Positions 847 to 20,269 of a stretch of DNA of 20,269 bases are shown here, in pieces. The stretch lies in sequence record NC_074633.1; one strand, written 5' to 3'. Each line of letters starts with the position of its first letter. Position 1 is the stretch's first letter. Made by a program: the position numbers and the translations under genes. The notes below the pieces were generated by a model. That model worked only from the letters and a program-made list of their open reading frames with translations, did no database searches and had not been told where the DNA came from.

Positions 847-967
847 AGTTCTATCAATTGTTGTATTACGTGTTTACATTTAAAAGCAATAAAGATTTGA
901 GTAATACTAATAATTACGATTTAAAGATTTAAAAATGTTGTCATCAAATCTTGATTTGCGGTGCCAA
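847..967. promoter_or_regulatory. Divergent promoter region between two RHH genes
   Basis: TTTAAAA at 879-885 (leftward) and TTTAAAAA at 928-935 with A-rich AAAGA upstream (rightward). Inverted repeat GTATTAC (863-869)/GTAATAC (901-907); direct repeat AAAGATTT at 891 and 923. Confidence 0.55.
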
Positions 968-1986: not shown

Positions 1987-2013
1987 ATATTCAACAGTAA
2001 TATTCATAATATT
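1987..2013 (+). repeat. 27-bp intergenic element ATATTCAACAGTAATATTCATAATATT (copy 1)
   Basis: Identical to 10363-10389. Confidence 0.92.
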
Positions 2014-2074
2014 AAACATAAAGATATTGCGCAAGTGAGATAGATTAAAAGATGTTTTCACTCAAGAAATAGTT

Positions 2075-4082: not shown

Positions 4083-4409
4083 ATGAAGAATAAGTTTGAA
4101 GATTGGAATAAATATAGATCTGACGTCAATAAGATTATCGTTGAGTATTTTAACAAAGTCGGCATAATGGCGACAACTAGAGCTTTATATTTCTCATTTG
4201 CACAAAAAATATTGGCAATTGTTAAAAAACATCAAGATGGAAGTCTTATTAATAAATTGATTGAAGGAAATATACAATATTTTGTGACTGCATTTGATGC
4301 AAATGAAAAAGTATTGCGTGATATTGTAAAAATTATAATTTTAGCTAAAATTGAGAAAATGGATCCTGATGATATATTGGAAGAAGTTTTGACACAAAAA
4401 GCTAACTAA
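4083..4409 (+). CDS. N-terminally truncated paralog of the major capsid protein (SIRV2-type four-helix bundle)
   Basis: Gap-free manual alignment to the neighbouring MCP: RALYFSFAQK vs RAIYQGYGLK and YFVTAFDANEKVL vs YYVSAFGANPQIL. Confidence 0.75.
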   Translation: MKNKFEDWNKYRSDVNKIIVEYFNKVGIMATTRALYFSFAQKILAIVKKHQDGSLINKLIEGNIQYFVTAFDANEKVLRDIVKIIILAKIEKMDPDDILEEVLTQKAN

Positions 4410-4410
4410 T

Positions 4411-4460
4411 CATATACAAAATATTATGTATATGGATTTTTTGCATTGAATTTTTATAAG
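4411..4460 (+). promoter_or_regulatory. MCP promoter: palindrome CATATACA-N8-TGTATATG, GCATTGAATTT box and TATA (TTATAAG)
   Basis: 8-bp inverted repeat at 4411-4418/4427-4434 with AATATT in the spacer; box at 4443-4453; TATA at 4454-4460; ATG at 4491. Confidence 0.65.
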
Positions 4461-4490
4461 CTATTAATTCTAATATCTAATTGACAAAAA

Positions 4491-4895
4491 ATGGCGAAAG
4501 GACACACACCAAGAAGTTATTCGCAAAGGTATGGTAAATGGAATGCAAAATTCACCGCATTTTCAAATCCAACTGTTGCCAGCACAATCCTAACTAATGT
4601 TGCACCGACCGCGCAAGAGAACTTCCAGACTAACGTACCTAGATTTACGTCAGTCAATGAGCAAGTTTCGGCGGTATTGACTCAGTACGGCGTGACTGGT
4701 CCTTCTAGAGCAATTTACCAAGGCTATGGTCTAAAGGTTGCGAGAGCGCTTAACAGGATTGGCGCTGGTCCCGCTCTAACGAATATGGTCGCTGGCTTAA
4801 AGGCTTATTACGTTTCAGCGTTTGGCGCTAATCCACAAATTTTAGATGCTGTGACTAACATAATCCTAGGATCTCCTAACGGATACGTAAGCTAA
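4491..4895 (+). CDS. Major capsid protein (rudivirus 134-aa DNA-binding coat protein)
   Basis: MAKGHTPRSYSQRYGKWNAKF...GYVS is highly similar to SIRV1/2 ORF134 and has the same length. Confidence 0.97.
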   Translation: MAKGHTPRSYSQRYGKWNAKFTAFSNPTVASTILTNVAPTAQENFQTNVPRFTSVNEQVSAVLTQYGVTGPSRAIYQGYGLKVARALNRIGAGPALTNMVAGLKAYYVSAFGANPQILDAVTNIILGSPNGYVS

Positions 4896-4915
4896 CCTTA
4901 AAAGCTAATTTTCAA

Positions 4916-4922
4916 TTTTTTT
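4916..4922 (+). terminator. Oligo-T terminator after MCP
   Basis: T7 run about 20 nt after the stop. Confidence 0.6.
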
Positions 4923-4943
4923 ATCTTTTCCTACTTCTTATTT

Positions 4944-4955
4944 TGCTTAAAAATG
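4944..4955 (+). promoter_or_regulatory. Promoter core TGCTTAAAAATG
   Basis: Identical 12-mer at 17155-17166; in both cases TTAAAA starts exactly 29 nt before the ATG. Confidence 0.65.
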
Positions 4956-4975
4956 TAATCTTTTAGTTCTCAATC

Positions 4976-5200
4976 ATGTTTGAGGAATATTTAAGACAAA
5001 AAGGTTTCGAACCCCATCATATTTCAATTCTTAAAGATTTCTTGATTGAAATAAAAGAGGCATTAGGTATAAATGCTAGGAATTATGAATTAGACGACGT
5101 CATAAATTCTATTGTTGAATATTTTGCGACAACATATATGCTAAGAAGAGAAGATCTTTTCCAATTAATAAATGGAGCAATTGAGGACGGTGTTGTGTAA
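4976..5200 (+). CDS. Hypothetical alpha-helical protein, 74 aa
   Basis: Has its own TATA box and abuts the glycosyltransferase start (TAAATG). Confidence 0.75.
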   Translation: MFEEYLRQKGFEPHHISILKDFLIEIKEALGINARNYELDDVINSIVEYFATTYMLRREDLFQLINGAIEDGVV

Positions 5201-6220
5201 ATGCCTAGAACGCTCATTCTCACTATGGGATATGCATCTGTAAAAAATGTGGCAGAAGATATCGCAAGTGTTGTAGGTAATTCCACAATTGATGTTGAGC
5301 CTACTTTATATCTGTTTAATGCCAATAAATTCGATAGGCTTATAGTATCTGTGCCATTTGTTCCGCCATTATTGAATAACTACTTGTTGGTCTATAACTA
5401 TTTCCAAGGTGAAAAGTATTTTTATACGACAGTTGATGGAAAACCAATTGTGCAGGGCATGAATGAGCACCTTGTAAGGAATATAAAATACATTCCAAAT
5501 TCTCAATTTTCAGCTGAAAATTTGAAATCTGTAGATTTAGACGTAGATATTCCAGTTTTTCACGGCGTAAATGTCGATATTGTAAAGAAGGCCGAGCAAT
5601 TAGTTCCAAAATTGAGACAAAAATTAGATTTAGACTTCCCCGACGCTGTGAAGATTGGAGTAGTTACTGGAATGACAAAGCGCAAGAATGTTGATCTATT
5701 TGTTGAGACGACAAAGTATTTAAATGAAAAAATGCCAGATATTGCTAAAAATGTTCATTTCTTTGTAATTTCTCACGCAGATTTTCAAAAGTTAGAAGTT
5801 CCGGCAAATGTCCACTTTATCGCGCGATTTGGATACCAAAGTAGAGAAAAGATATTTGCATTCTACGGCGCAATGGACTACATATTTGTTCCATCCGGAT
5901 GTGAAGGATTTGGACTACCAGTTCTTGAATCCATGGCCATGGGTACCCCCGTCATCCACATGGCTATACCACCGTTTACGGAGTATACTAGTTGGCAGTG
6001 GAACTTTTTGTTTAAAGATGACGACGTAATGGAATATTACGATAAAGATCACGGTCAAATATGGAAAATTCATAGATTTAAGCCAGAGACTGGTGCACTA
6101 GCAATTGCAACTGCCGTAATGGCGACTGACAGAGAAGAGAGGAGCAAAAGATTAAAAGAATTAGCTAAAAAATATGATATTAAGTTTTTATACAAAAGAT
6201 TTCTAGAGGACTTCGAATAG
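5201..6220 (+). CDS. GT-B fold glycosyltransferase (GT4-like)
   Basis: RKNVDL and PSGCEGFGLPVLESMAMGTPVI (EX7E motif). Confidence 0.93.
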   Translation: MPRTLILTMGYASVKNVAEDIASVVGNSTIDVEPTLYLFNANKFDRLIVSVPFVPPLLNNYLLVYNYFQGEKYFYTTVDGKPIVQGMNEHLVRNIKYIPNSQFSAENLKSVDLDVDIPVFHGVNVDIVKKAEQLVPKLRQKLDLDFPDAVKIGVVTGMTKRKNVDLFVETTKYLNEKMPDIAKNVHFFVISHADFQKLEVPANVHFIARFGYQSREKIFAFYGAMDYIFVPSGCEGFGLPVLESMAMGTPVIHMAIPPFTEYTSWQWNFLFKDDDVMEYYDKDHGQIWKIHRFKPETGALAIATAVMATDREERSKRLKELAKKYDIKFLYKRFLEDFE

Positions 6221-7147
6221 CGCATATACTGTTGCAGGACCAGTTGCCCATGCATAGACATTTGCCGGATTATTAACTTCAAATTCTATGCTATCACCTG
6301 GCAAAATTGGGAAATTGTTATACAATTGATTTCCAATGTAAACTATGTAATTTGACAAGTTCTGAAGTATAATTTTTACAGTTTGCAGTGCAGGACCAGA
6401 ATAAATTGGCGATGGTGTTGTTGAAACTTTCAGTTGCAAACCTTGAATTGCAGGCGGTGACATATACATTGTCAACTTATTAATTGTGCTTGATAGTGAG
6501 TTCATTGCCAAGTAAATGTAAGACAGTGCGTAAAGCAAAGTGTCTGCAACACTGTTAATTGCCCTGGATAAACCAGTAACCATCTGATCTGTTAATTTTG
6601 CACTAACCAAATAGATATTTTCGTAAACATTTTGAATTAGTTGAGGCAAATACAAAGTCGGTAATATTGCAGTTTTTAGCTGATTATCAACGCCAATCAC
6701 AACTTGATATAGATTTTCATAAACGTTTGCAATTTCTTGTTGTAAAGCGCTTTGTGTCTGTGCGACTGTCCCGGCGGTAAGTTTTGCGATTGCATTATAA
6801 ACGTCGGTCGGCATTTGTTCAATTGCTTCATATAGTTGAAATTGACTGTTTAAAATTGCTTGAATTTGTTCTATTGCAGAACCAACAAATCCTGCGATAT
6901 AAATTGGGTCTTGTTCAGTTAGCACTGGCTGGCCTTCAACATAAACTTCCTCTGAAAAATTCCCAACTTGCGCAGTAATATTGTTTGGGACATAAAGACT
7001 GCCATTTTTGAATAATTGCCTATCGATTAGTGAACCGCCAAAATAGATGTCTGACAACGTCAGCACTGCCGTGTTCCACATGGCAGATGTCAGTCTCTGG
7101 AACGGCTTTGCAAGAAGACTACTAATTGTCGCATATTGGATGCTCAT
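6203..7147 (-). CDS. Conserved rudiviral protein, probable minor virion component
   Basis: 314 aa. N-terminal LTSAMWN motif, central amphipathic coiled region, and a C-terminal beta domain resembling a segment of the 604-aa protein. Confidence 0.7.
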   Translation of the reverse strand: MSIQYATISSLLAKPFQRLTSAMWNTAVLTLSDIYFGGSLIDRQLFKNGSLYVPNNITAQVGNFSEEVYVEGQPVLTEQDPIYIAGFVGSAIEQIQAILNSQFQLYEAIEQMPTDVYNAIAKLTAGTVAQTQSALQQEIANVYENLYQVVIGVDNQLKTAILPTLYLPQLIQNVYENIYLVSAKLTDQMVTGLSRAINSVADTLLYALSYIYLAMNSLSSTINKLTMYMSPPAIQGLQLKVSTTPSPIYSGPALQTVKIILQNLSNYIVYIGNQLYNNFPILPGDSIEFEVNNPANVYAWATGPATVYALFEVL

Positions 7148-7193
7148 GATTTAAATTTATACGCTTTTAAGCTTAAAAACATCACATTTAATT

Positions 7194-7532
7194 ATGAGTC
7201 TTGACAATATTTTCGGTCCAGTCAGGCTCATTATCGACAAATTAAAAGAATTGGAAATGAGAGGCGAAGCTTATGGATTTTCACAATATTTGCCAAAGTC
7301 AATAATTTTATACAGAGCATCAGAAAATTCAATATTATATCAAGTGTTTATACCATCATTCCCTTACTATTTTGAATTTCTCCTAGAAAAAGATGAAAAA
7401 ACCAAAGCATTGCAAATTTCGGATTATAGAGTTGTTTATCCCGCACCAGTGAAAATCTCTGATTCGCAAATTCTAAAAGAATTAATCCAGGATTACTTGA
7501 CTATGCGACTTGGGGGCGGGCAAAATGAGTGA
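7194..7532 (+). CDS. Hypothetical protein, 112 aa
   Basis: Divergent from 7147, TATA-like sequence upstream, ATGAGTGA coupling to the next gene. Confidence 0.75.
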   Translation: MSLDNIFGPVRLIIDKLKELEMRGEAYGFSQYLPKSIILYRASENSILYQVFIPSFPYYFEFLLEKDEKTKALQISDYRVVYPAPVKISDSQILKELIQDYLTMRLGGGQNE

Positions 7533-7773
7533 GCTGACGCTTATTCTTACTACAATTTCGACAACTGCGACTTTGCTATTATCAATTGTTACTCTTTACT
7601 ACAAAATAAAACAAATGTTTCGTGAGGCAGTGAAAGAAATCGTGAAGCAAGAGTTGGACAATATAGTCAAAGAGATCATAAAGATAAAAGAAAAGCAAGA
7701 TGCGCAACAAAAAGATATTGAATATCTAAAGCAAGAAGTTGAAGAAATAAAAAGGAAGATTGAAAAATTATAA
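7525..7773 (+). CDS. Membrane-anchored coiled-coil protein, 82 aa
   Basis: Hydrophobic N-terminus (LTLILTTISTTATLLLSIVTLYY) followed by a heptad K/E-rich tail; ATG7525 overlaps the upstream stop. Confidence 0.78.
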   Translation: MSELTLILTTISTTATLLLSIVTLYYKIKQMFREAVKEIVKQELDNIVKEIIKIKEKQDAQQKDIEYLKQEVEEIKRKIEKL

Positions 7774-7968
7774 TCACTTTGTTGTTTTTTCTCTTACCTC
7801 TTTCAGAATTTTGATAACTTCTTGTGCTTTTTTGTACAATTCTGTCTTTCTAATATTTTCATCTTCAACTGTCGCTAATTCTAATGCCAAGTTATCAAGG
7901 GCGACAAACAATTTTGCTGAAAACTCTTTGTCAAATTTTGGTTTTTTCTCTTCTTCCTTCTCACTCAT
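7774..7968 (-). CDS. Hypothetical charged protein, 64 aa
   Basis: Translationally coupled to the GNAT-like gene (8-nt overlap). Confidence 0.7.
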   Translation of the reverse strand: MSEKEEEKKPKFDKEFSAKLFVALDNLALELATVEDENIRKTELYKKAQEVIKILKEVREKTTK

Positions 7969-8458
7969 CTTTTCTCACCTCTTCTTTTTTTTCGCTTACA
8001 TTTAAAAACTTGACAAAAACTGGAGTATTTGTCCTAGGGGTATTACCTACATATTCAAATCCGGCGTTCTTGTATAAGGCGTTTGAATGATCTGCAAAAC
8101 CTAAAGTCCATAATACTTCAATTCCATAAGATTTCAGCAGTTGAGATAATTTTTCTAAAAATTCGACTAGATAATCTCCAGGCGCAGTCTTTGTAATCCT
8201 ACGAATGAAATAAGATCTATCGATTGGAATATTATATTTTTCAGCGACAAATCTGAACGGCGTTGAGTCGTTAATCCACGCAACTGCAACTATGTAATTG
8301 TCACATTCATATGCAAAATATTTCTGGATCTTTGACGCCCCTCCGCCATGTGGCATACCCTGGCTGTGATATTTTGCGACAAGCAGTCGTGCTAATTCAA
8401 TATCTTTCTTATCTTGAAGTTCAACTATTTTGCATTCTTCTTGCATTTCAAATATCAT
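7961..8458 (-). CDS. Putative GNAT-family acetyltransferase (SIRV ORF154-like)
   Basis: YIVAVAW strand, YFIRRI, and NALYKNAGFEYVG (GNAT motif B). The true start may be ATG8446, given the TATA at 8471-8480. Confidence 0.7.
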   Translation of the reverse strand: MIFEMQEECKIVELQDKKDIELARLLVAKYHSQGMPHGGGASKIQKYFAYECDNYIVAVAWINDSTPFRFVAEKYNIPIDRSYFIRRITKTAPGDYLVEFLEKLSQLLKSYGIEVLWTLGFADHSNALYKNAGFEYVGNTPRTNTPVFVKFLNVSEKKEEVRKDE

Positions 8459-8497
8459 TATTCATCATATGCTTTATAAGTAAACTGGTATACAGTT

Positions 8498-8845
8498 TTA
8501 GGCATTTATGACGACTTCATCATCTTTATCTACAATTTTAAATTTCCATTTTTTAGCTTTTTTGAAATACACTAATACTGCCGGTTTGCAGTCGCAAAAA
8601 TTGAACATGTCGCAAAATTGAAATAGTTTATCAATTTGGAATTTATCAATCTTTTTCGAAAGTTTTGAAGTTGACTTAACTTCAATTGCAAAAATTATTC
8701 CATCTTTTGTTGCGATAATGTCGGGGAGTGGCTGTTTACCAGAACCAGAAACTGGAATTCTTGCGACTTTATAACCTTCATTTTTTAACAAATCCAGTGC
8801 TTTATATTCATAATATTTCCCAGAATTATGAATGTTAATCTTCAT
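8498..8845 (-). CDS. hjc: Holliday junction resolvase (archaeal Hjc family)
   Basis: SGKYYE, RIPVSG, PDIIA and IEVKST PD-(D/E)xK signatures. Confidence 0.95.
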   Translation of the reverse strand: MKINIHNSGKYYEYKALDLLKNEGYKVARIPVSGSGKQPLPDIIATKDGIIFAIEVKSTSKLSKKIDKFQIDKLFQFCDMFNFCDCKPAVLVYFKKAKKWKFKIVDKDDEVVINA

Positions 8846-8853
8846 GTTTTTTA

Positions 8854-10317
8854 TTATCTGTTTGCTATGTTTTTAAAACCTTTATTGTAAAATATAGGTT
8901 TGTAATTCTGCAGGTACACTTTTTTCAGTTCTAATTTTCTTTGTGTTTGTATTTTTCCAAGACCTTGCAATTGTTCACCAAGTTGTTGAGCAAATTGGAG
9001 ATCTTCATCCGAAAGACCGTAAAATTTCCATTTTTGTCTCCAATATTGTAAAAATTGATCATACGGTAATGTCCTTTCGCCGGCGTTATACGACAGATTG
9101 CCCTGGTATGTATATCTTGCGACTTCTAGGATCGCTGACGCCACCATTTTTGCATACCAGATGTTGTTGTATTTCTTATTTACAATTTTTTGTATTCTTT
9201 CATACAATTCATAATTTGAAATATATGTTTCTGCATATTGTGAATTTGAAATATTTGTTGCACCAGGTCCTAATTCTTGCAAATGCATGCCAAATATTTG
9301 ACCGAAAACTGAAATTACTGCCCTATCAGTTGCCAAAATTGCAGATAATTGAATGTCGTTAAGATTTTGATCTCCGTTCGTGGCTTCGCCACTCACGTCG
9401 TTCGGCACTTCGTGCCTCACTTCAGGGAAGTCTGGCATCAAAACGTTAAAATCTAAGGGCGTAAGGTCTAAAATTACTCCAAGTGCTTGTGAGAAATTTT
9501 GGATTTTTATGTTGTCGGCGAGAAGTTGATAATTATTTTCTTCTTCTGAAAAGGCGGAACGGTCAAACCAAGAAACGTCAAGTGCTATCCCACTATCAAT
9601 TATGTTGTTCAAGAGTGGAAGAAATGCTAACAAATATTTCGCTAAGTCTGGGAGTGAATTGAAATATTGTTGTGGGGTTTCGTTTTTCTGTTGAGCCAAT
9701 TTTGACAGTGCGTCAAATACCCCAGTATTTTTGACTAAAGAGTAAAGATAATTGTCAACTTCTGGATTTTGTGTCACTGCAACTCCAAGATTTTCAAATG
9801 TTGTAACAGTTACTGTCGTTGGCGGATTAGCAAAATACGATTTTAATTTTTCACATGCAAGATTATTGAAAATTACTCCAGGAGCAGGGGCGTAAACTGA
9901 GGCGTCAAATTGTGTTTCGTCAAAAACTGCAATTTGATACAATGTTGAACAATTTTTAACATATTGATCATAAAGTGAAGTAAAACTGTTGATGACGTCA
10001 AGTGCTGAAGATGTTGATAATGTCGCTAAATTGAAAGTAAACGATTGTGGCGAATTTGGTATGAAATTATTTAACACTGATGCTGAAAAATTGTTTATTG
10101 CATTTAGGAAGTTAAGAACAATTTGTGCGAAAGCAACCCCGTAATCGACATTCATGTAAGGCGGGGGTTTAACATTTTCAAGTGAAGATGGCAAAGTGCT
10201 TTCAATTCCTGCGCTTAACATTGCCTTAAATGCGGGATAAACATTTTGATTGAAAATCTTGCGGTAGAGATGATATTTCATCTGTGCAATTGATCTACTG
10301 CCTCTCCTTTTTGTCAT
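8854..10317 (-). CDS. Minor structural protein (SIRV2 ORF488-like)
   Basis: Basic N-terminus MTKRRGSRSIAQMKYHLYRKIF and FDxSxFD-type repeats; about 487 aa from ATG10317, matching the family size. Confidence 0.8.
   Translation of the reverse strand: MTKRRGSRSIAQMKYHLYRKIFNQNVYPAFKAMLSAGIESTLPSSLENVKPPPYMNVDYGVAFAQIVLNFLNAINNFSASVLNNFIPNSPQSFTFNLATLSTSSALDVINSFTSLYDQYVKNCSTLYQIAVFDETQFDASVYAPAPGVIFNNLACEKLKSYFANPPTTVTVTTFENLGVAVTQNPEVDNYLYSLVKNTGVFDALSKLAQQKNETPQQYFNSLPDLAKYLLAFLPLLNNIIDSGIALDVSWFDRSAFSEEENNYQLLADNIKIQNFSQALGVILDLTPLDFNVLMPDFPEVRHEVPNDVSGEATNGDQNLNDIQLSAILATDRAVISVFGQIFGMHLQELGPGATNISNSQYAETYISNYELYERIQKIVNKKYNNIWYAKMVASAILEVARYTYQGNLSYNAGERTLPYDQFLQYWRQKWKFYGLSDEDLQFAQQLGEQLQGLGKIQTQRKLELKKVYLQNYKPIFYNKGFKNIANR
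9375..9422. repeat. Two 24-bp imperfect tandem units, each with a 5-bp stem and GAA (minus strand) triloop
   Basis: GTGGC-TTC-GCCAC at 9380-9392 and GGCAC-TTC-GTGCC at 9404-9416; shared flanks CGTTCG and CTCAC. Confidence 0.8.
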
Positions 10318-10362
10318 GCCACATCTGTGTAATATTTGCATTTTCAAACCTTTTATTGCTCA

Positions 10363-10408
10363 ATATTCAACAGTAATATTCATAATATTCATTATATGCA
10401 TATTAAGC
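10363..10408 (+). repeat. 27-bp element (copy 2) plus ATATGCATAT palindrome in a divergent promoter region
   Basis: 10363-10389 is identical to 1987-2013; 10394-10408 is the exact reverse complement of 17107-17121. Confidence 0.92.
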
Positions 10409-10455
10409 ATTGAATTTATTTTAAGTTGTTGTGACAAAATAGATAACGATAAAAA

Positions 10456-10695
10456 ATGTCAGCCAACCCATCTGGACCACACGGTAAGAAAGTATCTGCA
10501 AGAGTTATTAGAGCTTTATTTGTCGGTTCAACAATTGGAATATTTGGCGGTTTTGGTTTATATTTACTTGCTGACGCAATTAACACATTAGCTCATGCGA
10601 CAATTGTAAGTCCTACTGGATTTCTATTACTAGGTTTTGGCGGTTCAATAGCAGGAGTAGTTGGTACAGAATTATCAAAAGATCTTGAAGAATAA
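10456..10695 (+). CDS. Small membrane protein with two glycine-rich TM helices, 79 aa
   Basis: ALFVGSTIGIFGGFGLYLLA and GFLLLGFGGSIAGVVG hydrophobic GxxxG segments. Confidence 0.8.
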   Translation: MSANPSGPHGKKVSARVIRALFVGSTIGIFGGFGLYLLADAINTLAHATIVSPTGFLLLGFGGSIAGVVGTELSKDLEE

Positions 10696-10707
10696 ATTCA
10701 AGATATG

Positions 10708-10714
10708 TTTTTTT
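10708..10714 (+). terminator. Oligo-T terminator
   Basis: T7 run 12 nt after the stop at 10695. Confidence 0.5.
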
Positions 10715-10740
10715 AAACTCTTTTTCCTAATGTGAAAATT

Positions 10741-12546
10741 ATGAGTAATTTACCCTATCCCTTAAAATACAAATTGCCACTTCAATATTTGTCTGTCGAA
10801 GATTGGAATAATTTTGTAAATGATCTTCTACTAGTTTATAATTCTCCAGTTGGCGCTTTAGCAAAATACTACTCCAAAGGAAATTTGCAAAATTTGAATG
10901 GAATTTTTGCAAAAACGTTAGATGTTGTACAACTTTATGTAAATGGTTATGAAGCGTTATACAATCTTAAGCAAGTTCTGGCATACACTTTTGGCGGTTT
11001 GTTTGAAAAATACAAACTTTACCCCCCAGTTAACTTTCAAGATATTGAGCAATTAACAAAATTGCCAAGTTTCTATGTGCAAAAATACAACATCCCTATC
11101 GCAAAATATAAACAAATAGTTGAAACATTTAATTTCATATTTGAAAAACATTTGCCTAGAATTACAAAAACTATGCAAGTGCTAATTCCCAAACTTTCGT
11201 ATAAATACCTGCCTAAGGCAATTGCGGGCGGAATGACGACAATTTCTGGTTCACAGTCATTATCTCAAATTTTGCAAAACGAATTCGGAATTACAGATTT
11301 TTCGACATGGAAAGGCGTAACAATTGAAAATTTAAGCGATAACAACTTGATTATTAATAATGCAATTGTATTAATGCCAAAACAGTGTTTAAAACTTACC
11401 GCCTCAAGTCCATCAGAAGTTACAATTACTGCTCAACAACCTGCGCTAATTTCAACATTATTAGAATTTAGCGGTATACCTGTGACAGCCTATGCAATAA
11501 CGATAACGAATAGCCAATCTGATCCTACACCTACAAATTTTCAACAATTATTAACGCTTAATTTGTCCGGTATAATTTCTTCACCTTCACAATTATTGAA
11601 TTTGAAATTCTGCCAAGACGTAAATTGCAACACACAATTATACGCATGGATTGAATATTATACCAGTGATTTATCCACAGTTTACGTTTGGGTTTTAATA
11701 CCAGGCGGTATTCCCGCAAATTCTTCAATAACGATATACATGTTTGTAACAAATAAAAATCAATATCCTTACACTGGGATAAATGCATATTACAACACGG
11801 CATACGATAACGGTCCAAATGTCTTTGACGCTTATATGAACTTTATGGGTTCTAGACCAATACCTTCAGATTACAATTATTATACAAATCTTTCTGGATA
11901 TCCAGCGTTTGTCGCTGAAAGTGGAACAACTCCAGGATATTTGGATACATTTCCTAACGCCAGCTATTCCTATGCCGATGTTTATATATCAGCTCCAAAG
12001 TCTGCAAGAGTCCCGGAAATATTTGAAGGTATGGCATATTATGACGGCAGTGTTGATGAGCAAGGAATTTTCTTTCTTGCTAATCCGTCAGGCGGTTGGT
12101 CAACTCCTGCATATACTGTATGTGGTGGAAGTATTAGCGGGGATCTTGAAGTCCCAACAGATGGTTGGGCTGTTACATGGGATCCAGCAGGTTGTACCCC
12201 AGCAGGAATTTTAGGCGGGGGTAATGTAGAGGCGCAAATATCAGGTGCTTTTTTTACATCTTCTGGATATAATTTCTATCAAGCAATAGTTACAGATAAT
12301 GAAATAATTTTCAATGGTGCAACACCAAGTGATCCAACTACTCCATATGCCCAATTGCAAATCCAAAATGTTACTAGTTACAGTGGGACGATTACGATTT
12401 ATGGCAATGCGTTAGGGACAGTCGACAGTTCGTTCACTGATTCACATTATGGATATTGGTATTATCTCAGGGCAAGAGCCTATCCACCAAACGGAGTAAT
12501 GCCGACAAATTCACAACCACAGAAAATTATCGCATATATTGCATGA
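10741..12546 (+). CDS. Minor structural protein (SIRV2 ORF564-like) with a DUF2341-like/lectin-like C-terminal region
   Basis: Position before the large tail gene; YAITITN...LKF...LYAWIE...VWVLIP...IPANSSITIYM...NGPNVF pattern and terminal YYLRARAYPPNGVMP. ATG10741 preferred over GTG10732. Confidence 0.72.
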   Translation: MSNLPYPLKYKLPLQYLSVEDWNNFVNDLLLVYNSPVGALAKYYSKGNLQNLNGIFAKTLDVVQLYVNGYEALYNLKQVLAYTFGGLFEKYKLYPPVNFQDIEQLTKLPSFYVQKYNIPIAKYKQIVETFNFIFEKHLPRITKTMQVLIPKLSYKYLPKAIAGGMTTISGSQSLSQILQNEFGITDFSTWKGVTIENLSDNNLIINNAIVLMPKQCLKLTASSPSEVTITAQQPALISTLLEFSGIPVTAYAITITNSQSDPTPTNFQQLLTLNLSGIISSPSQLLNLKFCQDVNCNTQLYAWIEYYTSDLSTVYVWVLIPGGIPANSSITIYMFVTNKNQYPYTGINAYYNTAYDNGPNVFDAYMNFMGSRPIPSDYNYYTNLSGYPAFVAESGTTPGYLDTFPNASYSYADVYISAPKSARVPEIFEGMAYYDGSVDEQGIFFLANPSGGWSTPAYTVCGGSISGDLEVPTDGWAVTWDPAGCTPAGILGGGNVEAQISGAFFTSSGYNFYQAIVTDNEIIFNGATPSDPTTPYAQLQIQNVTSYSGTITIYGNALGTVDSSFTDSHYGYWYYLRARAYPPNGVMPTNSQPQKIIAYIA

Positions 12547-12600
12547 TTTGATTATTTTTTCCTTAAATGCAATAAATCAAACTACACAATTCTTATAATG

Positions 12601-12627
12601 AATAATATGAATATTCGCATTCAATAT
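12601..12627 (-). repeat. Degenerate inverted copy of the 27-bp element
   Basis: The reverse complement ATATTGAATGCGAATATTCATATTATT matches the element at 21/27 positions. Confidence 0.7.
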
Positions 12628-12678
12628 TGTGCAGTTGAATAAATTATAATTGCATTTGCTGATATTATTTAGATAGAA

Positions 12679-15600
12679 ATGAGCTTTATCATCTCTGGTC
12701 TTGAAAGTTTGGAAACATTCTTTTCAGATGAACTTACTGCTCTGGAAAACTTTACAAACTTTTTAGCATCTGATTTCGTTTCATTTTTCCAAACTGTTTC
12801 AACGGATTTGCAAAATTTCATTTCATTTTTGGCAACTGCAATTAGCGATATTCCAACTTTCATACAACAGAACATATCATATTTTGTACAAGTACTTCAA
12901 AATGTATTTGCAAATATTGCATCTGCAGTATCTGGATTTACACAATATGTTGCAAACGCATTACAAGGCTTTTTCCAAGATGTTGCAAATTTAATGCAAG
13001 GATTCCTAAATGCAATTTATAACTTTTTCTCAAATATTGCAAACGATCTTGCTAATTTTGTAAATGTCGCAGTTTCTGATTTTATACAAGGTTTTAGTCC
13101 GTTAGCGAAATATATTGCCCCCGCTATTCCACAAATTGTAAGCTCAGTCTCCCCAATTATTGCCCCCTATCTTTTAGCTAGGATTTTGCCAAATGCAATT
13201 GACAGATTAGGAGAAATCTTGCCTGAAATTGAAATTGATTTAGCCCCAATCGGTTTAGGTGGGAAATTTAACATTAAATTTGGAGAAATTGCAAAAATGG
13301 TTGGTGAGCCAATTGCAGATCTCATGAAAGAGATCTCTGGTGAAATGATGACTGACCTTAAGGAGTTTTTGAAAGAACCATTTATTTCTAATTTCAAAAT
13401 TACAATAAGAGAAATTTTCAATAGTATTGGACTTGGAGACCTGCCATTTGCGGATCCATCATATCGTGAAATTACGGCATGGTTAGGGGCGAGATCATTT
13501 TCAGAATTGAAAGATCATCTAAAAGAGACACTACTTCTCACTGGTTATCCTGCATGGTTCACTAATGCATTCTTAGAACCGCCAGCTGACGATTATATTC
13601 CTGGAAATCCACTGTTTAAGCCAGTTTCAATTCGTGATGTGATTACTGCAGTTGAATATGGTCTATTATCTTCATCAGCAGTTGAACAATATGCAGAAAA
13701 TAATTTGGTAACGAAAAAAACTGCAAAATTAATGTATCAAAATCAGAATTTGAGATTATTTCAGCGTGTGGTTGAGGAAGGAATAAGAAGTTTTGTCATC
13801 CAGCCGGATAAGGCTTATGATCTAATGTTGTCTGGGAAAGATCTCACAGGAAAAGATCTATTTACAAAATATTTCGAAATATTTTATCAATTTGCGACAC
13901 AAAGATTCGCAAAACAAGTCCTCAGATCCCTACTTTCAAGAGCACTATCCAATTTTGGTAGACCTTATATAGATATAAAGTATTTATCTAAAACAGTTGA
14001 TGAAATATACAAACAATTGAATTTGCCAAAAGAAATCTCCCTATTATTTGGACAATTAATTACAGAATCACAATTAATACAGTACAACGAGTTAATTTTC
14101 ACATTTTTGAGATCAAAAGCTGAAAAAGGAATATTTAACAAAGCAGATGTAGAGAAGTTATTAAAAGAACACAATTTTAATGTTTCTGAATCACTTTTCA
14201 TTTTACAACATTATGTAGATTCAGTTGTTGCAACTGAAGAAATACAACTATTAGAACAAAAACTACAAAATTTCTTTATATCTGACAAAGATGCAGAAAA
14301 TGAATTGAAAAATTTAAAAGTAGATGATAGATATGCAAAACTTTTAATCGAAAGATACTACAATTTGACGTTAACAAAAGAGAAAGCAAACGTATACCTT
14401 TCACTGTTGAAAAAAGGATATTACAACAAACATGAGGCAAAAACTGTATTCAAAGCACTTGGTTACTCAACAAGTGTAATTGATGAACTGCTAGACTTAT
14501 ATTCACAAGAAATTGAGGCAGAATTACAGATAAAGACAATACAACAGAAAGCCCAAATGTTCCTTCTGGATGAACAAGAGATTAACACTGAATTGAAAAA
14601 ATTACATGTCTCTGACGCACTTATTCAAGAAATTGTAACGGAGTATTTGCAAATTCCACTTTTAAAGCAACAAGTTGACGTTTATACATCTCTGATCAGA
14701 AAGGGGTACATAAACGCACAAGAGGCAAAAAGGATATTTTCTGCACTCGGATTTAAACAAACTGCAATTGAACAATTGATCCCACTTTACACACAAGAAA
14801 TTGAAATTGAGGCAACAATTTCGAAATATAAAGCACTTCTTCAACATTTCCTAATTGATGAAAAGGTTGCAGAACAAGAATTGCTAAAACTGCATATTTC
14901 TAATGCATTAATTGACGAATTGTTAACAGAATATTATCAAGTCCCATTGAATGGAAAAATATTCAATATCTACTTTGGTTTGTTAGAAAAAGGATATATG
15001 ACGGCGGAAACAATTAAGCGAATTCTAGGGTCAAAAAATATTAATGCAACTGCACTTGCAGAAATTTCAAACGCTTACAATTTCGCAATTGAAATTGAAA
15101 ATGCAGTTAAATATTACCAGTCATTGCTGAAAAATTTACTAATTGATGCCAAAACTGCGGAACAAGAATTAAGGAAATTAGGCGTTTCTGACGTGTTGAT
15201 AAAAGCAATAATTGCGGAGTATACGCCAGTTTTAGTAAATGTGAAAGCAGTTGCGCAAACAATTATAGAGGGCGCAATATATCATGTGGGCAAAGTTCCA
15301 ATTTCAGTTGCTCATGTCGTGCCAGAATTGAAGAAATTGAACATTCCAGATAACCAAATTAATTCGCTTATAGCTGAAATTGAATCACAAATTGCATTGG
15401 AAATCTGGAAAAAATATTTACCGTCACTTTCAGATATTAAAACTGCGCTGACTTACAATTATCCAATCGACAAATTATTGCAATTATCTCTCATACCTGC
15501 TGAATTATTCAATCTGCATGCTGATCTAACTAGATATGAACTTATCGCAAGAGAAGTACAAAGCTTAAAGTCGTATTACTCAAAATTACTGATCTACGGC

Positions 15601-16026
15601 ATAACAAATTCACAGTTAGAACAAATACTGAGACAATATGGAATTAACGACTCAATATTGCAAGTTTTACAATTACAGGCACAACTGGAGAAAATTCTGA
15701 CTGCTTACCAGGAGTTATACTTAACGCCGTCAAAAGTACTATCAATCGCTGAATATGTTTCAAACCCAGATCAATTAATTCAAAAAGTATTCAGAGAATA
15801 TAGCGTGCCGGCTGACTTACAGAATGTCTACTTGGAATACGCAAGAAATAGAAGGCTTAGGTCATACGTTAGCGAAATAATATACACAATTTCAGATTTA
15901 GTTGAGAGACATAAGATATCCCTGGACCAGGCGGTCCAGTACTTGCAACAATTCAAAAAATATGGTCTAACAGATGAAGAAATTGAATTAATTAAATTAA
16001 ACTGGCAATTAAGAGGGATGACATAA
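12679..16026 (+). CDS. Large terminal-fibre protein (SIRV2 ORF1070/gp38-like)
   Basis: Largest ORF (1115 aa), all-alpha, with an amphipathic N-terminus and internal repeats; syntenic with other rudiviruses. Confidence 0.85.
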   Translation: MSFIISGLESLETFFSDELTALENFTNFLASDFVSFFQTVSTDLQNFISFLATAISDIPTFIQQNISYFVQVLQNVFANIASAVSGFTQYVANALQGFFQDVANLMQGFLNAIYNFFSNIANDLANFVNVAVSDFIQGFSPLAKYIAPAIPQIVSSVSPIIAPYLLARILPNAIDRLGEILPEIEIDLAPIGLGGKFNIKFGEIAKMVGEPIADLMKEISGEMMTDLKEFLKEPFISNFKITIREIFNSIGLGDLPFADPSYREITAWLGARSFSELKDHLKETLLLTGYPAWFTNAFLEPPADDYIPGNPLFKPVSIRDVITAVEYGLLSSSAVEQYAENNLVTKKTAKLMYQNQNLRLFQRVVEEGIRSFVIQPDKAYDLMLSGKDLTGKDLFTKYFEIFYQFATQRFAKQVLRSLLSRALSNFGRPYIDIKYLSKTVDEIYKQLNLPKEISLLFGQLITESQLIQYNELIFTFLRSKAEKGIFNKADVEKLLKEHNFNVSESLFILQHYVDSVVATEEIQLLEQKLQNFFISDKDAENELKNLKVDDRYAKLLIERYYNLTLTKEKANVYLSLLKKGYYNKHEAKTVFKALGYSTSVIDELLDLYSQEIEAELQIKTIQQKAQMFLLDEQEINTELKKLHVSDALIQEIVTEYLQIPLLKQQVDVYTSLIRKGYINAQEAKRIFSALGFKQTAIEQLIPLYTQEIEIEATISKYKALLQHFLIDEKVAEQELLKLHISNALIDELLTEYYQVPLNGKIFNIYFGLLEKGYMTAETIKRILGSKNINATALAEISNAYNFAIEIENAVKYYQSLLKNLLIDAKTAEQELRKLGVSDVLIKAIIAEYTPVLVNVKAVAQTIIEGAIYHVGKVPISVAHVVPELKKLNIPDNQINSLIAEIESQIALEIWKKYLPSLSDIKTALTYNYPIDKLLQLSLIPAELFNLHADLTRYELIAREVQSLKSYYSKLLIYGITNSQLEQILRQYGINDSILQVLQLQAQLEKILTAYQELYLTPSKVLSIAEYVSNPDQLIQKVFREYSVPADLQNVYLEYARNRRLRSYVSEIIYTISDLVERHKISLDQAVQYLQQFKKYGLTDEEIELIKLNWQLRGMT
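14125..15222 (+). repeat. Four 96-aa (288-bp) protein repeats in the fibre protein
   Basis: KG(I/Y) starts at 14125, 14413, 14701 and 14989, exactly 288 bp apart; the fourth unit is partial. Confidence 0.88.
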
Positions 16027-17107: not shown

Positions 17108-17166
17108 CTTAATATGCATATGTTTAATATTTGGAATATTACAATTGCGCATTCTGCTTAAAAATG
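17107..17166. promoter_or_regulatory. Inverted copy of the AATATT element plus TGCTTAAAAATG core upstream of the methyltransferase operon
   Basis: 17107-17147 matches the reverse complement of 10368-10408 at 34/41 positions; TATA core at 17155-17166. Confidence 0.7.
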
Positions 17167-17186
17167 CCCACATCAGGGATTAAAAT

Positions 17187-18255: not shown

Positions 18256-19311
18256 GTGATAATCTATTACGTTTACCCCATGCATCATGACGTTAGCTTC
18301 AAATTTGTCGCACAAGAGCATATCAAAATGCTAAGAAGCAAATATACTGTCTATGACATTCCAGAGCTTAACTTTTATCAGTTTACACCATACGGGCGCC
18401 CACTGACATTTATCCACCCACTTTTTTACGGTATGTTGAATTGGACCGACATACAGTGGTCATTTTTCAAAATGTACAGATCGAAAGTGTCAAAAATTGT
18501 TGGCGTTGAAGTTGCGGACAGTGACAGAATTTCAGAAAAGTTCATTGAGATTGCAAACTTATGGGCTGACGCACTTGTCGTCAACTCTAAGTGGTCTTAT
18601 GATGCTTATATAAATTCAGGGCTCAAAATTCTAATCCATATTGTACCACATAATTACGATCCAAGACTTGAAGCCCCAGATGATCAATTAAAAGTTTCGC
18701 CAGAAATCAAAAAAATTGAAGAGATAAAGAAAGACAAAAAGATAAAGATCATCTTATTCTTTTCCTGGCATAGCGGTTACAGGAAAGGTGACGATTTATT
18801 TCAGAAGATAGCAAGACAAATACAAAAAGAGAGAGATGACGTTTACTTTATTGTAAAAAGCGCAACACCAAGACAAGATTTGGCAGACTTGAGGCTTTTC
18901 AACATCACTGGCGTAATTCCGTTTGACGATATCGTAAAGCTATACAGAATTTCTGACCTTCTGCTTTTGCCGTCAAGGGGTGGCTCATTTGAACTTAACG
19001 GTCTTGAGGCTTTAGTTAGTGGCATACCAGTTATAGCATCAGATGAAGGACCTTGGACTGAATATTTCCCACCGACATTAAGGCATTTTCTAGCTAAAAC
19101 TGTAAACCATCCAATCGTCCTGCCCAATAATCCAATTCATATCGGTCGTGGAGTAGAAATTTCAGTTGATGACGCAGTAGATAAAGCACTCAAAATACTG
19201 GATAACGTGGAAGAAGAAAAAGCAAAAGTGAGAGATGAAATTGAGTTTTTCCGCAATAACTACAGTTTTGAAGTAGTAAAAAAGAAATTACTTAAGGTTG
19301 TTGAGAATTGA
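18256..19311 (+). CDS. GT-B fold glycosyltransferase (GT4-like)
   Basis: YYVYPMHHDVSFKFVA N-terminus typical of rudiviral GTs; RKGDD and PSRGGSFELNGLEALVSGIPVI. GTG18256 chosen as start because it directly follows the upstream TGA. Confidence 0.92.
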   Translation: MIIYYVYPMHHDVSFKFVAQEHIKMLRSKYTVYDIPELNFYQFTPYGRPLTFIHPLFYGMLNWTDIQWSFFKMYRSKVSKIVGVEVADSDRISEKFIEIANLWADALVVNSKWSYDAYINSGLKILIHIVPHNYDPRLEAPDDQLKVSPEIKKIEEIKKDKKIKIILFFSWHSGYRKGDDLFQKIARQIQKERDDVYFIVKSATPRQDLADLRLFNITGVIPFDDIVKLYRISDLLLLPSRGGSFELNGLEALVSGIPVIASDEGPWTEYFPPTLRHFLAKTVNHPIVLPNNPIHIGRGVEISVDDAVDKALKILDNVEEEKAKVRDEIEFFRNNYSFEVVKKKLLKVVEN

Positions 19312-20136
19312 CTCTGCGTACTTTCTGATAATTCTTGTGTTCATCCTCAATGCTGACGCAGTAACCCCACATTTTTTGTCAATATCTGGTTGAGTTATTG
19401 TATAACCGTCATTCTTTGCAAGATAATACAAAATTGTGCATGCAACAACTTTTGGACTTCTGCCAGAGAAAATGCCAGATTTCTCAATCTCTTTTGAAAA
19501 GTTAAGCGCTTTTTCTATTAATTCAATTGGCAATCCCAATCGCAAACCGCACTCTTTTACAAAATCTTCAACTGCAAAATTTGGTATCTTCTCATCAAAA
19601 TACTTTAACACCTCAAAATAAGCGCTGGTAAATTGTTTTGGCGAAATCTTGTATATCTCCCAAACTTTTTCGACATATTCATCAAACGGCATTAAAATTC
19701 TCAGTTTACGATACGCAATATAGATAGAAACTAAAACAACAATTTCATGACCTAGATATCTTAAATGTTTATTTCCCCACAACTTCTGCAAAATCCTACT
19801 GGCTTCTTGCCTTATGGCGTCATTTCCACCAATTTTTTGAACTGCAGTTACTAAAAATCTTAAAGCTTCCAACAAAGGCTTACTTTCTGCTGAATAAAGA
19901 TTTGAAAGCCTGATGTTTTTCGGTTTTATACCGATAGTTGGCAAAAATCCTGAATTGATGATAACACTTGGATTTATTGGAAAAGCTCTTGCCCTTTCCA
20001 TAAATTGCTCGGCGTTATAAGCTCTCCAGTCCATGCCCTGGTCTACAACTCTATCTTCTAAAACTTCGCCAGTTTCAGTACAGATGAACTCACCTCTTTC
20101 ACTATCAAATACAATTTTGTCTGGTGCGCAACTCAT
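19288..20136 (-). CDS. tfb: Virus-encoded transcription initiation factor B (TFB/TFIIB) homolog, full length and divergent
   Basis: CAPDKIVFDSERGEFICTETGEVLEDRVVDQGMDWRAY mirrors the Sulfolobales TFB ribbon/B-reader; two cyclin repeats (SIYIAYRK; SGRSPKVVACTILY...TQPDI...GVT). Confidence 0.93.
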   Translation of the reverse strand: MSCAPDKIVFDSERGEFICTETGEVLEDRVVDQGMDWRAYNAEQFMERARAFPINPSVIINSGFLPTIGIKPKNIRLSNLYSAESKPLLEALRFLVTAVQKIGGNDAIRQEASRILQKLWGNKHLRYLGHEIVVLVSIYIAYRKLRILMPFDEYVEKVWEIYKISPKQFTSAYFEVLKYFDEKIPNFAVEDFVKECGLRLGLPIELIEKALNFSKEIEKSGIFSGRSPKVVACTILYYLAKNDGYTITQPDIDKKCGVTASALRMNTRIIRKYAESILNNLK

Positions 20137-20254
20137 ATGTGAACATCAAATTGATTACATTTTTATTTCTTGCTATAGCCGATTGCATTTTTATTGCATA
20201 TACATCAAGTCGTTCCAACAAGTTTTCGTCAATTTTAAACGTTACAACTTCCAC
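20105..20254 (-). pseudogene. Truncated or chimeric copy of the terminal RHH gene (49-aa ORF)
   Basis: Manual translation: [49 protein letters not shown]. The first 13 aa are identical to 16..192, similarity continues to YAIK, and the SRSEVIR helix is lost. Confidence 0.65.
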
Positions 20255-20269
20255 CGCAATCGCCTACAC
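20215..20269 (-). repeat. Right inverted terminal repeat (55 bp perfect)
   Basis: Reverse complement of 1-55. Confidence 0.97.

Follow-up and report, generated by a model that had tools for sequence, protein, structure and literature searches.

A TATA-adjacent box in the palindrome-linked promoters of Metallosphaera rod-shaped virus 1 and its relatives

Over its 20,269 bp, the stretch of DNA analyzed here, referred to throughout as the window, shows 100% identity to MN876843, the complete genome of Metallosphaera rod-shaped virus 1 (MRV1), a member of the genus Hoswirudivirus in the family Rudiviridae whose record carries 27 annotated genes. It is syntenic with its nearest relatives, ARV2, SSRV1, and ARV3, each of which likewise encodes a homolog of transcription factor B (TFB), which in MRV1 is gp27. 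Overall identity among these four hoswirudiviruses is ~76 to 84%, and their hosts belong to three genera, Metallosphaera, Acidianus, and Saccharolobus. The element under study is a short box that recurs upstream of the genes for the major capsid protein (MCP; gp10), for the small hydrophobic protein gp20, and for the terminal-fiber protein gp22 (Table 1). A search of the MRV1 window against Rfam matched no RNA family.

The three boxes have the coordinates, the sequences, and the distances to the ATG that had been given by a first-pass annotation, which was made from the letters of the sequence. A TATA-like sequence does stand directly 3' of each box, in the form of the A/T-rich runs TTTTATAAG, TTATTTTAAG, and AAATTATAA, and the box was rightly placed at the position of the TFB-recognition element (BRE) and just upstream of it: the hexamer TTGAAT adjoins the A/T-rich run at all three sites, and the register is the same in the orthologous promoters. 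The accompanying description of the three targets as structural-gene starts applies only loosely to gp20, a 79-residue hydrophobic protein with no assigned function whose gene is the first of an operon that includes the structural gene gp21. The third box can be aligned with the other two only by a 1-nt insertion, and the TTGAAT core therefore lies 45, 46, and 44 nt before the three ATG codons.

Counts of the word within the genome say little about its significance. GCATTGAAT occurs twice where 0.56 occurrences are expected, with at least two found in 10 of 100 shuffles, and its one-mismatch variants are not enriched in the MRV1 genome (10 against 12.4 expected). With correction for discovery over 15 upstream windows, 63 of 2,000 shuffles place one and the same 11-mer at an equal offset in two windows, a marginal result, and 869 of 2,000 place a shared hexamer at an equal offset (±1) in three, which is not significant. 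The regions upstream of gp10 and gp20 are, however, identical at 33 of 42 positions, ungapped and in register, a value that none of 300 shuffles reached (the best gave 29). The reality of the box rests on this likeness of the gp10 and gp20 promoters and on conservation among orthologs; the word statistics within the genome are weak. The identical 11-mers of the MCP and gp20 promoters are probably a matter of common descent or gene conversion of promoter copies and not of independent selection for the word. GCAGTTGAAT is found again at 13648-13657, 30 nt from GCAGTTGAAC at 13678-13687, inside the gp22 coding sequence, where the pair probably represents a short repeat of the coding sequence rather than a promoter.

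In its arrangement, the box resembles the BRE and TATA of Sulfolobales core promoters, with the MRV1 hexamer placed directly 5' of an 8-bp A/T-rich box and with A at -3. It differs from the Sulfolobales BRE in having T and not G at -6, strong Sulfolobales promoters being said to have G at -6 and A at -3, and in a conservation that extends 3 nt (GCA) further upstream than a canonical BRE would. The BRE consensus of the Sulfolobales is RNWAAW, and both ATTGAA and ATTCAA match it at five of six positions.

The box is one part of a larger unit. Repeat analysis of MRV1 revealed a common module of 40 to 60 nt, in either orientation, in five intergenic regions, and the core of this module is a 22-bp palindrome with the consensus ATATACATAATATTATGTATAT. 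A position weight matrix (PWM) of the palindrome, built from 17 hoswirudivirus copies and reaching a maximum of 13.1 in shuffled sequences, finds exactly five sites in MRV1, all of them intergenic and scoring 17 to 25 (Table 1). These five palindromes serve six transcription units, and the gp22 module forms inverted-repeat pairs with the gp19/gp20 and gp07 modules. The distance from palindrome to ATG is 57 nt at the MCP gene, 58 nt at gp20, and 64 nt at the fiber gene in all four viruses, and it is 47 nt at the methyltransferase gene and 53 nt at the ATPase gene in MRV1, ARV2, and SSRV1, with ARV3 differing at both. Four of the six MRV1 units (MCP, gp20, gp24, and gp19) have exactly 18 nt between palindrome and TATA.

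Within the 18-nt linker, the box comprises the last nine bases, with the consensus G[CT]ATT[GC]AAT. Its TT[GC]AAT portion occupies the six positions preceding the TATA, that is, the BRE position, and its GCA is the end of a recurring linker element, ATT(G/A)nGCA, with the variants ATTAAGCA, ATTGCGCA, ATTGAGCA, and ATTGTGCA. At gp24, the place of the box is held by GCATTCTGC followed by TTAAAAAT; at gp19, the linker GCA directly adjoins the TATA, and at gp07, it stands ten bases away. The three promoters with the box have in common a TATAA-like or T-rich TATA and short predicted leaders, and those of gp24 and gp07 have a TATA of the TTAAAA(A)(G)ATG type and would be nearly leaderless. The three box promoters may form a functional subclass, and the same pattern would be shown by a simple class of strong promoters. 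A run of six T residues (GGATTTTTTG, 4434-4442), which lies within the linker of the MCP promoter between the gp09 stop codon and the first box, is plausibly an archaeal terminator signal for gp09.

Table 1. Genes, boxes, and promoter elements of the MRV1 window discussed in the text
Feature	Position	Strand	Description
gp10	4491-4895		Major capsid protein (MCP)
gp20	10456-10695		79-aa hypothetical, hydrophobic protein
gp21	3' of gp20, same operon		DUF2341 structural protein
gp22	12679-16026		1,115-aa minor structural (terminal-fiber) protein
gp27	19288-20136	-	Viral TFB homolog with zinc ribbon and cyclin repeats; Pfam PF08271, PF00382
Box 1, GCATTGAATTT	4443-4453	+	gp10 (MCP) promoter; 48 nt before ATG at 4491; TTGAAT at 4446-4451, the BRE position
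TATA-like element TTTTATAAG	4452-4460	+	MCP promoter; invariant in four viruses; 31-39 nt before ATG
Palindrome ATATACAAAATATTATGTATAT	4412-4433	.	18 nt upstream of MCP TATA; PWM 25.4; kept in SIRV1, SIRV2, and SIRV4 MCP promoters
Box 2, GCATTGAATTT (identical 11-mer)	10407-10417	+	gp20-gp21 promoter; 49 nt before gp20 ATG at 10456; TTGAAT at 10410-10415
TATA-like element TTATTTTAAG	10416-10425	+	gp20 promoter
Palindrome	10376-10397	.	Serves both gp19 and gp20, whose promoters diverge, with each TATA 18 nt away; PWM 23.5
Linker, gp20 side of palindrome 10376-10397	10398-10415		
Linker, gp19 side of palindrome 10376-10397	10358-10375		
TATA-like element AATAAAAG	10350-10357	-	gp19 promoter; preceded by TTGAATATTGAGC; kept in ARV2, SSRV1, and ARV3
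Box 3, GCAGTTGAAT	12631-12640	+	gp22 promoter; 48 nt before ATG at 12679; TTGAAT at 12635-12640
TATA-like element AAATTATAA	12641-12649	+	gp22 promoter
Palindrome	12593-12614	.	Upstream of gp22; 26-nt linker containing ATTCAATATTG; PWM 17.2
gp24 (methyltransferase) module	17118-17165	+	Palindrome 17118-17139; 18-nt linker ending in GCATTCTGC (17149-17157); TATA TTAAAAAT (17158-17165)
gp07 (ATPase) module	2000-2051	+	Palindrome 2000-2021; 22-nt linker with ATTGCGCA; TATA ATTAAAAG (2044-2051)
Second-type promoter, gp03	~866-880		
Second-type promoter, gp07	2044-2056		
Second-type promoter, gp11	~4945-4958		
Second-type promoter, gp16			
Second-type promoter, gp24	17158-17168		
Second-type promoter, gp27	~20163-20176		

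Comparison of MRV1, ARV2, SSRV1, and ARV3 showed that, within the intergenic regions of MCP and gp20, conservation is highest in the block formed by the box and its TATA. Across the four viruses, the MCP block reads G[CT]ATT[GC]AATTTTTATAAGCT and the gp20 block reads G[CT]ATTGAATTTATTTTAA, the latter being invariant bar one position. The central base of the MCP box is G in MRV1 only, the other three viruses having C (TTCAAT). ARV2 (GCAGTAGAAT) and ARV3 (GCAATTGAAT) retain the box at the fiber gene, and SSRV1, despite its TFB, has lost it there. Purifying selection in four related viruses argues that the box is part of real promoters. An observation of another kind concerns ARV2 (6661-6745), where the MCP promoter has, in its upstream half, palindrome arms and a linker (GCATATTAA) of the kind seen at gp20, unlike MRV1, SSRV1, and ARV3, which have the MCP type there; this suggests that promoter copies within one genome undergo gene conversion.

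The first-pass annotation had seen in the box a late-promoter signature of structural genes. The module is present, however, at several units that do not encode virion proteins, namely those of the gp07 ATPase, the gp24 methyltransferase, and gp19, and in ARV2 and SSRV1 it also precedes the TFB gene, the promoters of which match the PWM (22.1 and 24.6, respectively) although they lie outside its training set. Because gp24 carries GCATT, that half of the box is not limited to virion genes, and conversely the fiber gene of SSRV1, which is one, has no box. As a mark of virion genes the box finds no support, and its standing as a putative late-promoter signature is weakened by the modules at non-virion genes.

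Further matches outside the training set were found at promoters of SIRV1, SIRV2, SIRV4, SRV, and SBRV1. When 50,697 virus records were searched with tblastn, homologs of gp27 were found only in the four hoswirudiviruses and in the unclassified Sulfolobales viruses YNP1 and YNP2; within the Rudiviridae, they are confined to the former, and SIRV1, SIRV2, and SIRV4 have none. IMG/VR, when searched for more viruses with a TFB, yielded none, and no TFB was present in the stretches examined around IMG/VR MCP loci, which were only a part of each contig. The MCP promoters of SIRV1, SIRV2, and SIRV4 nevertheless consist of the same palindrome (PWM scores of 22.4 at position 11072 of SIRV1 and 26.1 at position 13988 of SIRV2), the 9 nt GACGTGAA[AT], and a TTTAT-type TATA. 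In a MAFFT alignment, the hoswirudivirus box is lined up column for column with the 9-mer GACGTGAA[AT], and a 9-nt gap accounts for the extra linker of the hoswirudiviruses. Similarly, SIRV2 ORF399 and ORF564 (the gp21 homolog) are preceded by the palindrome, 10 nt (gtTTTGAGTg or gaTTTGAGTt), and TTTATTTA. Rudiviral MCP promoters in IMG/VR mostly have CGTGAAA ahead of the TATA. One contig, IMGVR_UViG_3300026906_000062, has GCTAATTCAATCTTTAAAT before its MCP gene (~9920-10000), like the TTCAAT of the hoswirudiviruses and unlike the common CGTGAAA, and there is no TFB in the 16.1 kb examined of its 16.9 kb, the genome being possibly incomplete.

The motif thus extends beyond TFB-encoding genomes: SIRV1, SIRV2, and SIRV4 carry a hexamer of this type in the equivalent place, and having a hexamer of the [GT]TGA[AG]T type at the BRE position is therefore a family trait and no correlate of a viral TFB. 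What is specific to the TFB-encoding genus is the G[CT]A triplet together with the extra 9 nt of linker, approximately one helical turn. Palindrome-to-TATA spacings across the Rudiviridae cluster at ~9 to 10 and 18 to 20 nt, which again differ by about one helical turn. SIRV2 has palindrome sites at 8623, 8737, 13988, 14711, 17322, 23679, 23737, and 27758, and SIRV1 has eight. As far as sequence matches can tell, the 22-bp palindrome is a mark of many promoters across the Rudiviridae; no description of it as a family-wide rudiviral element was found in the accessible literature.

The nearest known system is the ORF134 (MCP) promoter of SIRV1 and SIRV2, P134 (Kessler et al. 2006, PMC1635249). 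It drives the orthologous gene and has the same 22-bp palindrome upstream (PWM scores of 22 to 26), its [GT]TGAA[AT] hexamer adjoins a TTTAT-type TATA, and the TTGAC just before the ATG is kept. In contrast, the hoswirudivirus palindrome lies 18 nt and not 9 nt from the TATA, the additional linker being GCATATTAA-like, and the hexamer is TT[GC]AAT with G[CT]A ahead of it. In a reconstituted in vitro system, host RNA polymerase transcribed the SIRV1 promoter when supplied with recombinant TATA-binding protein (TBP) and TFB of the host, and the host winged-helix protein Sta1 stimulated this transcription, most strongly when TBP or TFB was limiting (PMC1635249). Sta1 gave footprints over the core promoter and over a second region ~30 nt upstream (PMC1635249). 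Reg2, the oligonucleotide published for the core site, corresponds to the TATA of SIRV1 P134 and the sequence downstream of it, and the center of the SIRV1 palindrome lies 34 nt upstream of the center of that oligonucleotide. The position of the palindrome would fit the second Sta1 footprint.

We interpret the box as the TATA-proximal end of duplicated composite promoters, each consisting of the 22-bp palindrome, a linker, and an A/T-rich TATA, and we assign this reading a probability of roughly 0.6. The architecture of the modules, their conservation, their paralogy, and their presence in relatives without a TFB are observed. In the mechanism that we propose, TBP would bind the TATA, and a TFB would contact the TT[GC]AAT hexamer and orient the complex. 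The host TFB would be the simplest reader, because promoters of rudiviruses without a TFB have the same arrangement, and the box is probably an ordinary promoter element read by the host, with no special role as a target of the viral TFB. Transcription would then start ~22 to 25 nt downstream of the TATA, near 4483-4485, 10447-10449, and 12671-12673, leaving leaders of 7 to 8 nt, with which the placement of the TATA start 37 to 39 nt before the ATG is compatible. The constant 48 to 49 nt between box and ATG would follow from the TATA-to-start geometry combined with these short leaders. The palindrome would be the site of a dimeric regulator that assists in recruiting TBP and TFB, and the best candidate to bind it would be a host Sta1 ortholog, by homology with the footprint at the SIRV1 MCP promoter. 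Start sites, bound proteins, and the timing of expression are all predictions of this model.

Several points weigh against it. The TATA assignments and leader lengths were derived from geometry. The palindrome-to-TATA spacing is uneven, being 22 nt at gp07, 23 to 26 nt at gp22, and 28 nt at the TFB genes of ARV2 and SSRV1. The Sta1 consensus, ATNT-N8-WNAT, is uninformative in MRV1 (95 matches against 94 expected, with 4412-4427 among them), and the link to Sta1 is therefore one of promoter homology and position only. Finally, a role for the viral TFB is conceivable, because the GCA and the extra 9-nt linker are specific to the genus that encodes one.

If the box were not the BRE end of a composite promoter, it might be an extra operator half-site for a dimeric or polymerizing regulator, either a viral ribbon-helix-helix (RHH) protein (gp01 or gp03) or the palindrome factor spreading to the TATA, and act in occlusion or activation; we regard this as unlikely. 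Words resembling T[GC]AATAWT do turn up repeatedly, as ATGAATAT in the arms of the palindrome, as TTGAATATTG and ATTCAATATTG in the linkers of gp19 and gp22, and as TTGAATTT or TTGAATAA in the box, but the likeness is not general, the arms of the MCP palindrome reading GTATAT and not GAATAT. The gp22 promoter contains an inverted repeat, ATTCAA-N10-TTGAAT, which is not kept in ARV2 or ARV3. MRV1 encodes two RHH proteins, and SIRV1 offers a precedent in its RHH protein SvtR (gp08), which represses the gp30-ORF1070 fiber promoter, orthologous to that of MRV1 gp22, and is thought to spread on DNA (PMC5569661). The SvtR consensus ATnnTTCAAnAnnnnnAAAATG is nevertheless missing from the MRV1 box promoters, a single match with two mismatches being found at 4218, in gp09, against 1.9 expected, and the SIRV1 site lies ~80 nt upstream of the TATA and does not adjoin it. 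A position directly next to the TATA is, moreover, what would be expected of a BRE.

The box was also put forward in the first-pass annotation as the best candidate target of the viral TFB, and a model in which gp27 specifically reads it, as a BRE variant or extended BRE, and switches on the late virion genes would be analogous to the late sigma factors of phages, in which a viral paralog of a host promoter-recognition factor is likewise paired with a conserved word before virion genes. The properties of gp27 are compatible with such a role. Pfam detects in it the zinc ribbon and a cyclin repeat of TFIIB, it aligns with human TFIIB over residues 5 to 274, and its identity to any full-length protein outside the rudivirus group is at most ~35%. 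In an alignment of the viral TFBs with 82 other TFBs, the putative BRE-reading helix-turn-helix of gp27 keeps an Arg, which we take to be the counterpart of the BRE-reading R286 of TFIIB, and departs at the flanking positions from the cellular TEVTIRNRYK, so that an altered specificity is conceivable. The distribution of the parts may be cited in its favor as well: within the family, gp27 homologs are limited to the four hoswirudiviruses, only these have the G[CT]A and the additional linker where viruses without a TFB have GACGTGAA[AT] directly after the palindrome, and their promoters are near-identical in viruses of three host genera.

Other evidence makes such a dedicated reader improbable. 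A comparable hexamer is present in viruses without a TFB (GTGAA[AT] at the SIRV MCP genes and TTTGAGT at SIRV2 ORF399 and ORF564), and the homologous SIRV1 promoter uses host TFB (PMC1635249). The recognition helices differ in all four hoswirudiviruses (TASALRMNTR, VDTALRRNTG, TGAGLRKNAK, and TVIGLREQIK) while the box is constant; reader and word therefore do not covary, which, to judge from these alignments, is not what tight coevolution of the viral TFB and the box would predict. The central base is G or C among orthologs, SSRV1 has the TFB and a fiber gene without the box, and GCA-containing linkers also stand before non-virion genes and the TFB gene. The association of TFB and box is that of a single clade and amounts to one evolutionary event. 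Unlike the words paired with phage late sigma factors, then, the MRV1 word is limited neither to the viruses bearing the factor nor to virion genes, and it does not vary with the factor.

Two further features of gp27 deserve mention. Its B-reader region, ARAFPINPSVIINSGFLPT (NSGFLPT), is conserved among the viral TFBs but departs from the consensus of cellular ones, a hint that what has changed is a function in initiation and not the reading of the BRE. Its zinc ribbon keeps only two Cys residues (C3 and C19, with CTETG in place of CxxC), as do those of its nearest metagenomic relatives. The gene for one metagenomic neighbor of gp27, P0007 (31% identity), lies beside the gene for the S-layer protein SlaA, and for that reason P0007 is assigned to a cellular, Sulfolobales-type chromosome.

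A more restricted proposal, that the clade-specific G[CT]A, the 9-nt longer linker, and the hexamer together make up an extended BRE read better by the divergent viral TFB than by host TFBs, is more doubtful still. If it were true, the viral TFB would be a portable initiation factor that allows one promoter set to serve in Metallosphaera, Acidianus, and Saccharolobus, with possible effects on the timing of virion genes, and it would be the first sigma-like switch from an archaeal virus. Least probable is that the box word has no function of its own, being left over from the duplication of promoters or from gene conversion in AT-rich DNA, and that only the TATA and the palindrome matter, since the weak word statistics and the exchange between copies by which gp20-type sequence replaced the upstream part of the ARV2 MCP promoter must be set against a box that is better conserved than the flanking linker and post-TATA sequence, in viruses with ~76 to 84% overall identity, and that has an alignable counterpart in SIRV1, SIRV2, and SIRV4.

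Other features of the MRV1 genome came to light in the course of the analysis. A second type of promoter has a TATA followed directly by ATGT(A/C), in the form TTAAAAATGTAA or TTTTAAATGTAA, at the genes listed in Table 1; it is probably the "GTC" element found downstream of the TATA in SIRV1 and SIRV2 (e.g., ATTTAAAAATGTC in SIRV2). The annotated start of gp19, the ATG at 10341 on the minus strand, lies only ~9 to 16 nt downstream of the TATA-like element of that gene. The next in-frame ATG, at 10317 (MTKRRGSRS...), fits both the start of the ARV2 gene and the 58-nt palindrome-to-ATG distance of ARV2 and ARV3, and the MRV1 start has probably been miscalled by 8 codons.

The gene that follows the second box varies within the genus. 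In SSRV1, the slot equivalent to that of gp20 (SSRV1 gp21, 11024-11320) encodes a homolog of the SIRV2 pyramid (egress) protein P98, with 52% identity, behind the same box promoter as gp20, and MRV1, ARV2, and ARV3 have in that slot an unrelated 79-residue protein with two hydrophobic segments. This looks like a non-homologous replacement, and the P98 homolog in SSRV1 makes gp20 a candidate egress protein. The genome has a terminal inverted repeat of just 80 nt (1-80 and 20190-20269, 91% match), and gp01 (16-192) begins 15 nt from the terminus. A promoter would not fit into that space, which means either that the deposited sequence lacks part of its ends or that gp01 has an unusual mode of expression.

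To our knowledge, no promoter has been mapped in a TFB-encoding rudivirus, and SIRV1 P134 is the only rudiviral promoter that has been studied biochemically. The present analysis provides a promoter map of MRV1, with five palindrome-linked modules, their exact spacing, and one palindrome that serves two divergent promoters, and it ties the promoters of the hoswirudiviruses to SIRV1 P134 and Sta1. Should there be an element specific to the viral TFB, the clade-specific GCA and the extra linker are more likely to constitute it than TTGAAT. If host factors suffice, the box would be a variant of the BRE like any other, and some different function would have to be sought for the viral TFB.

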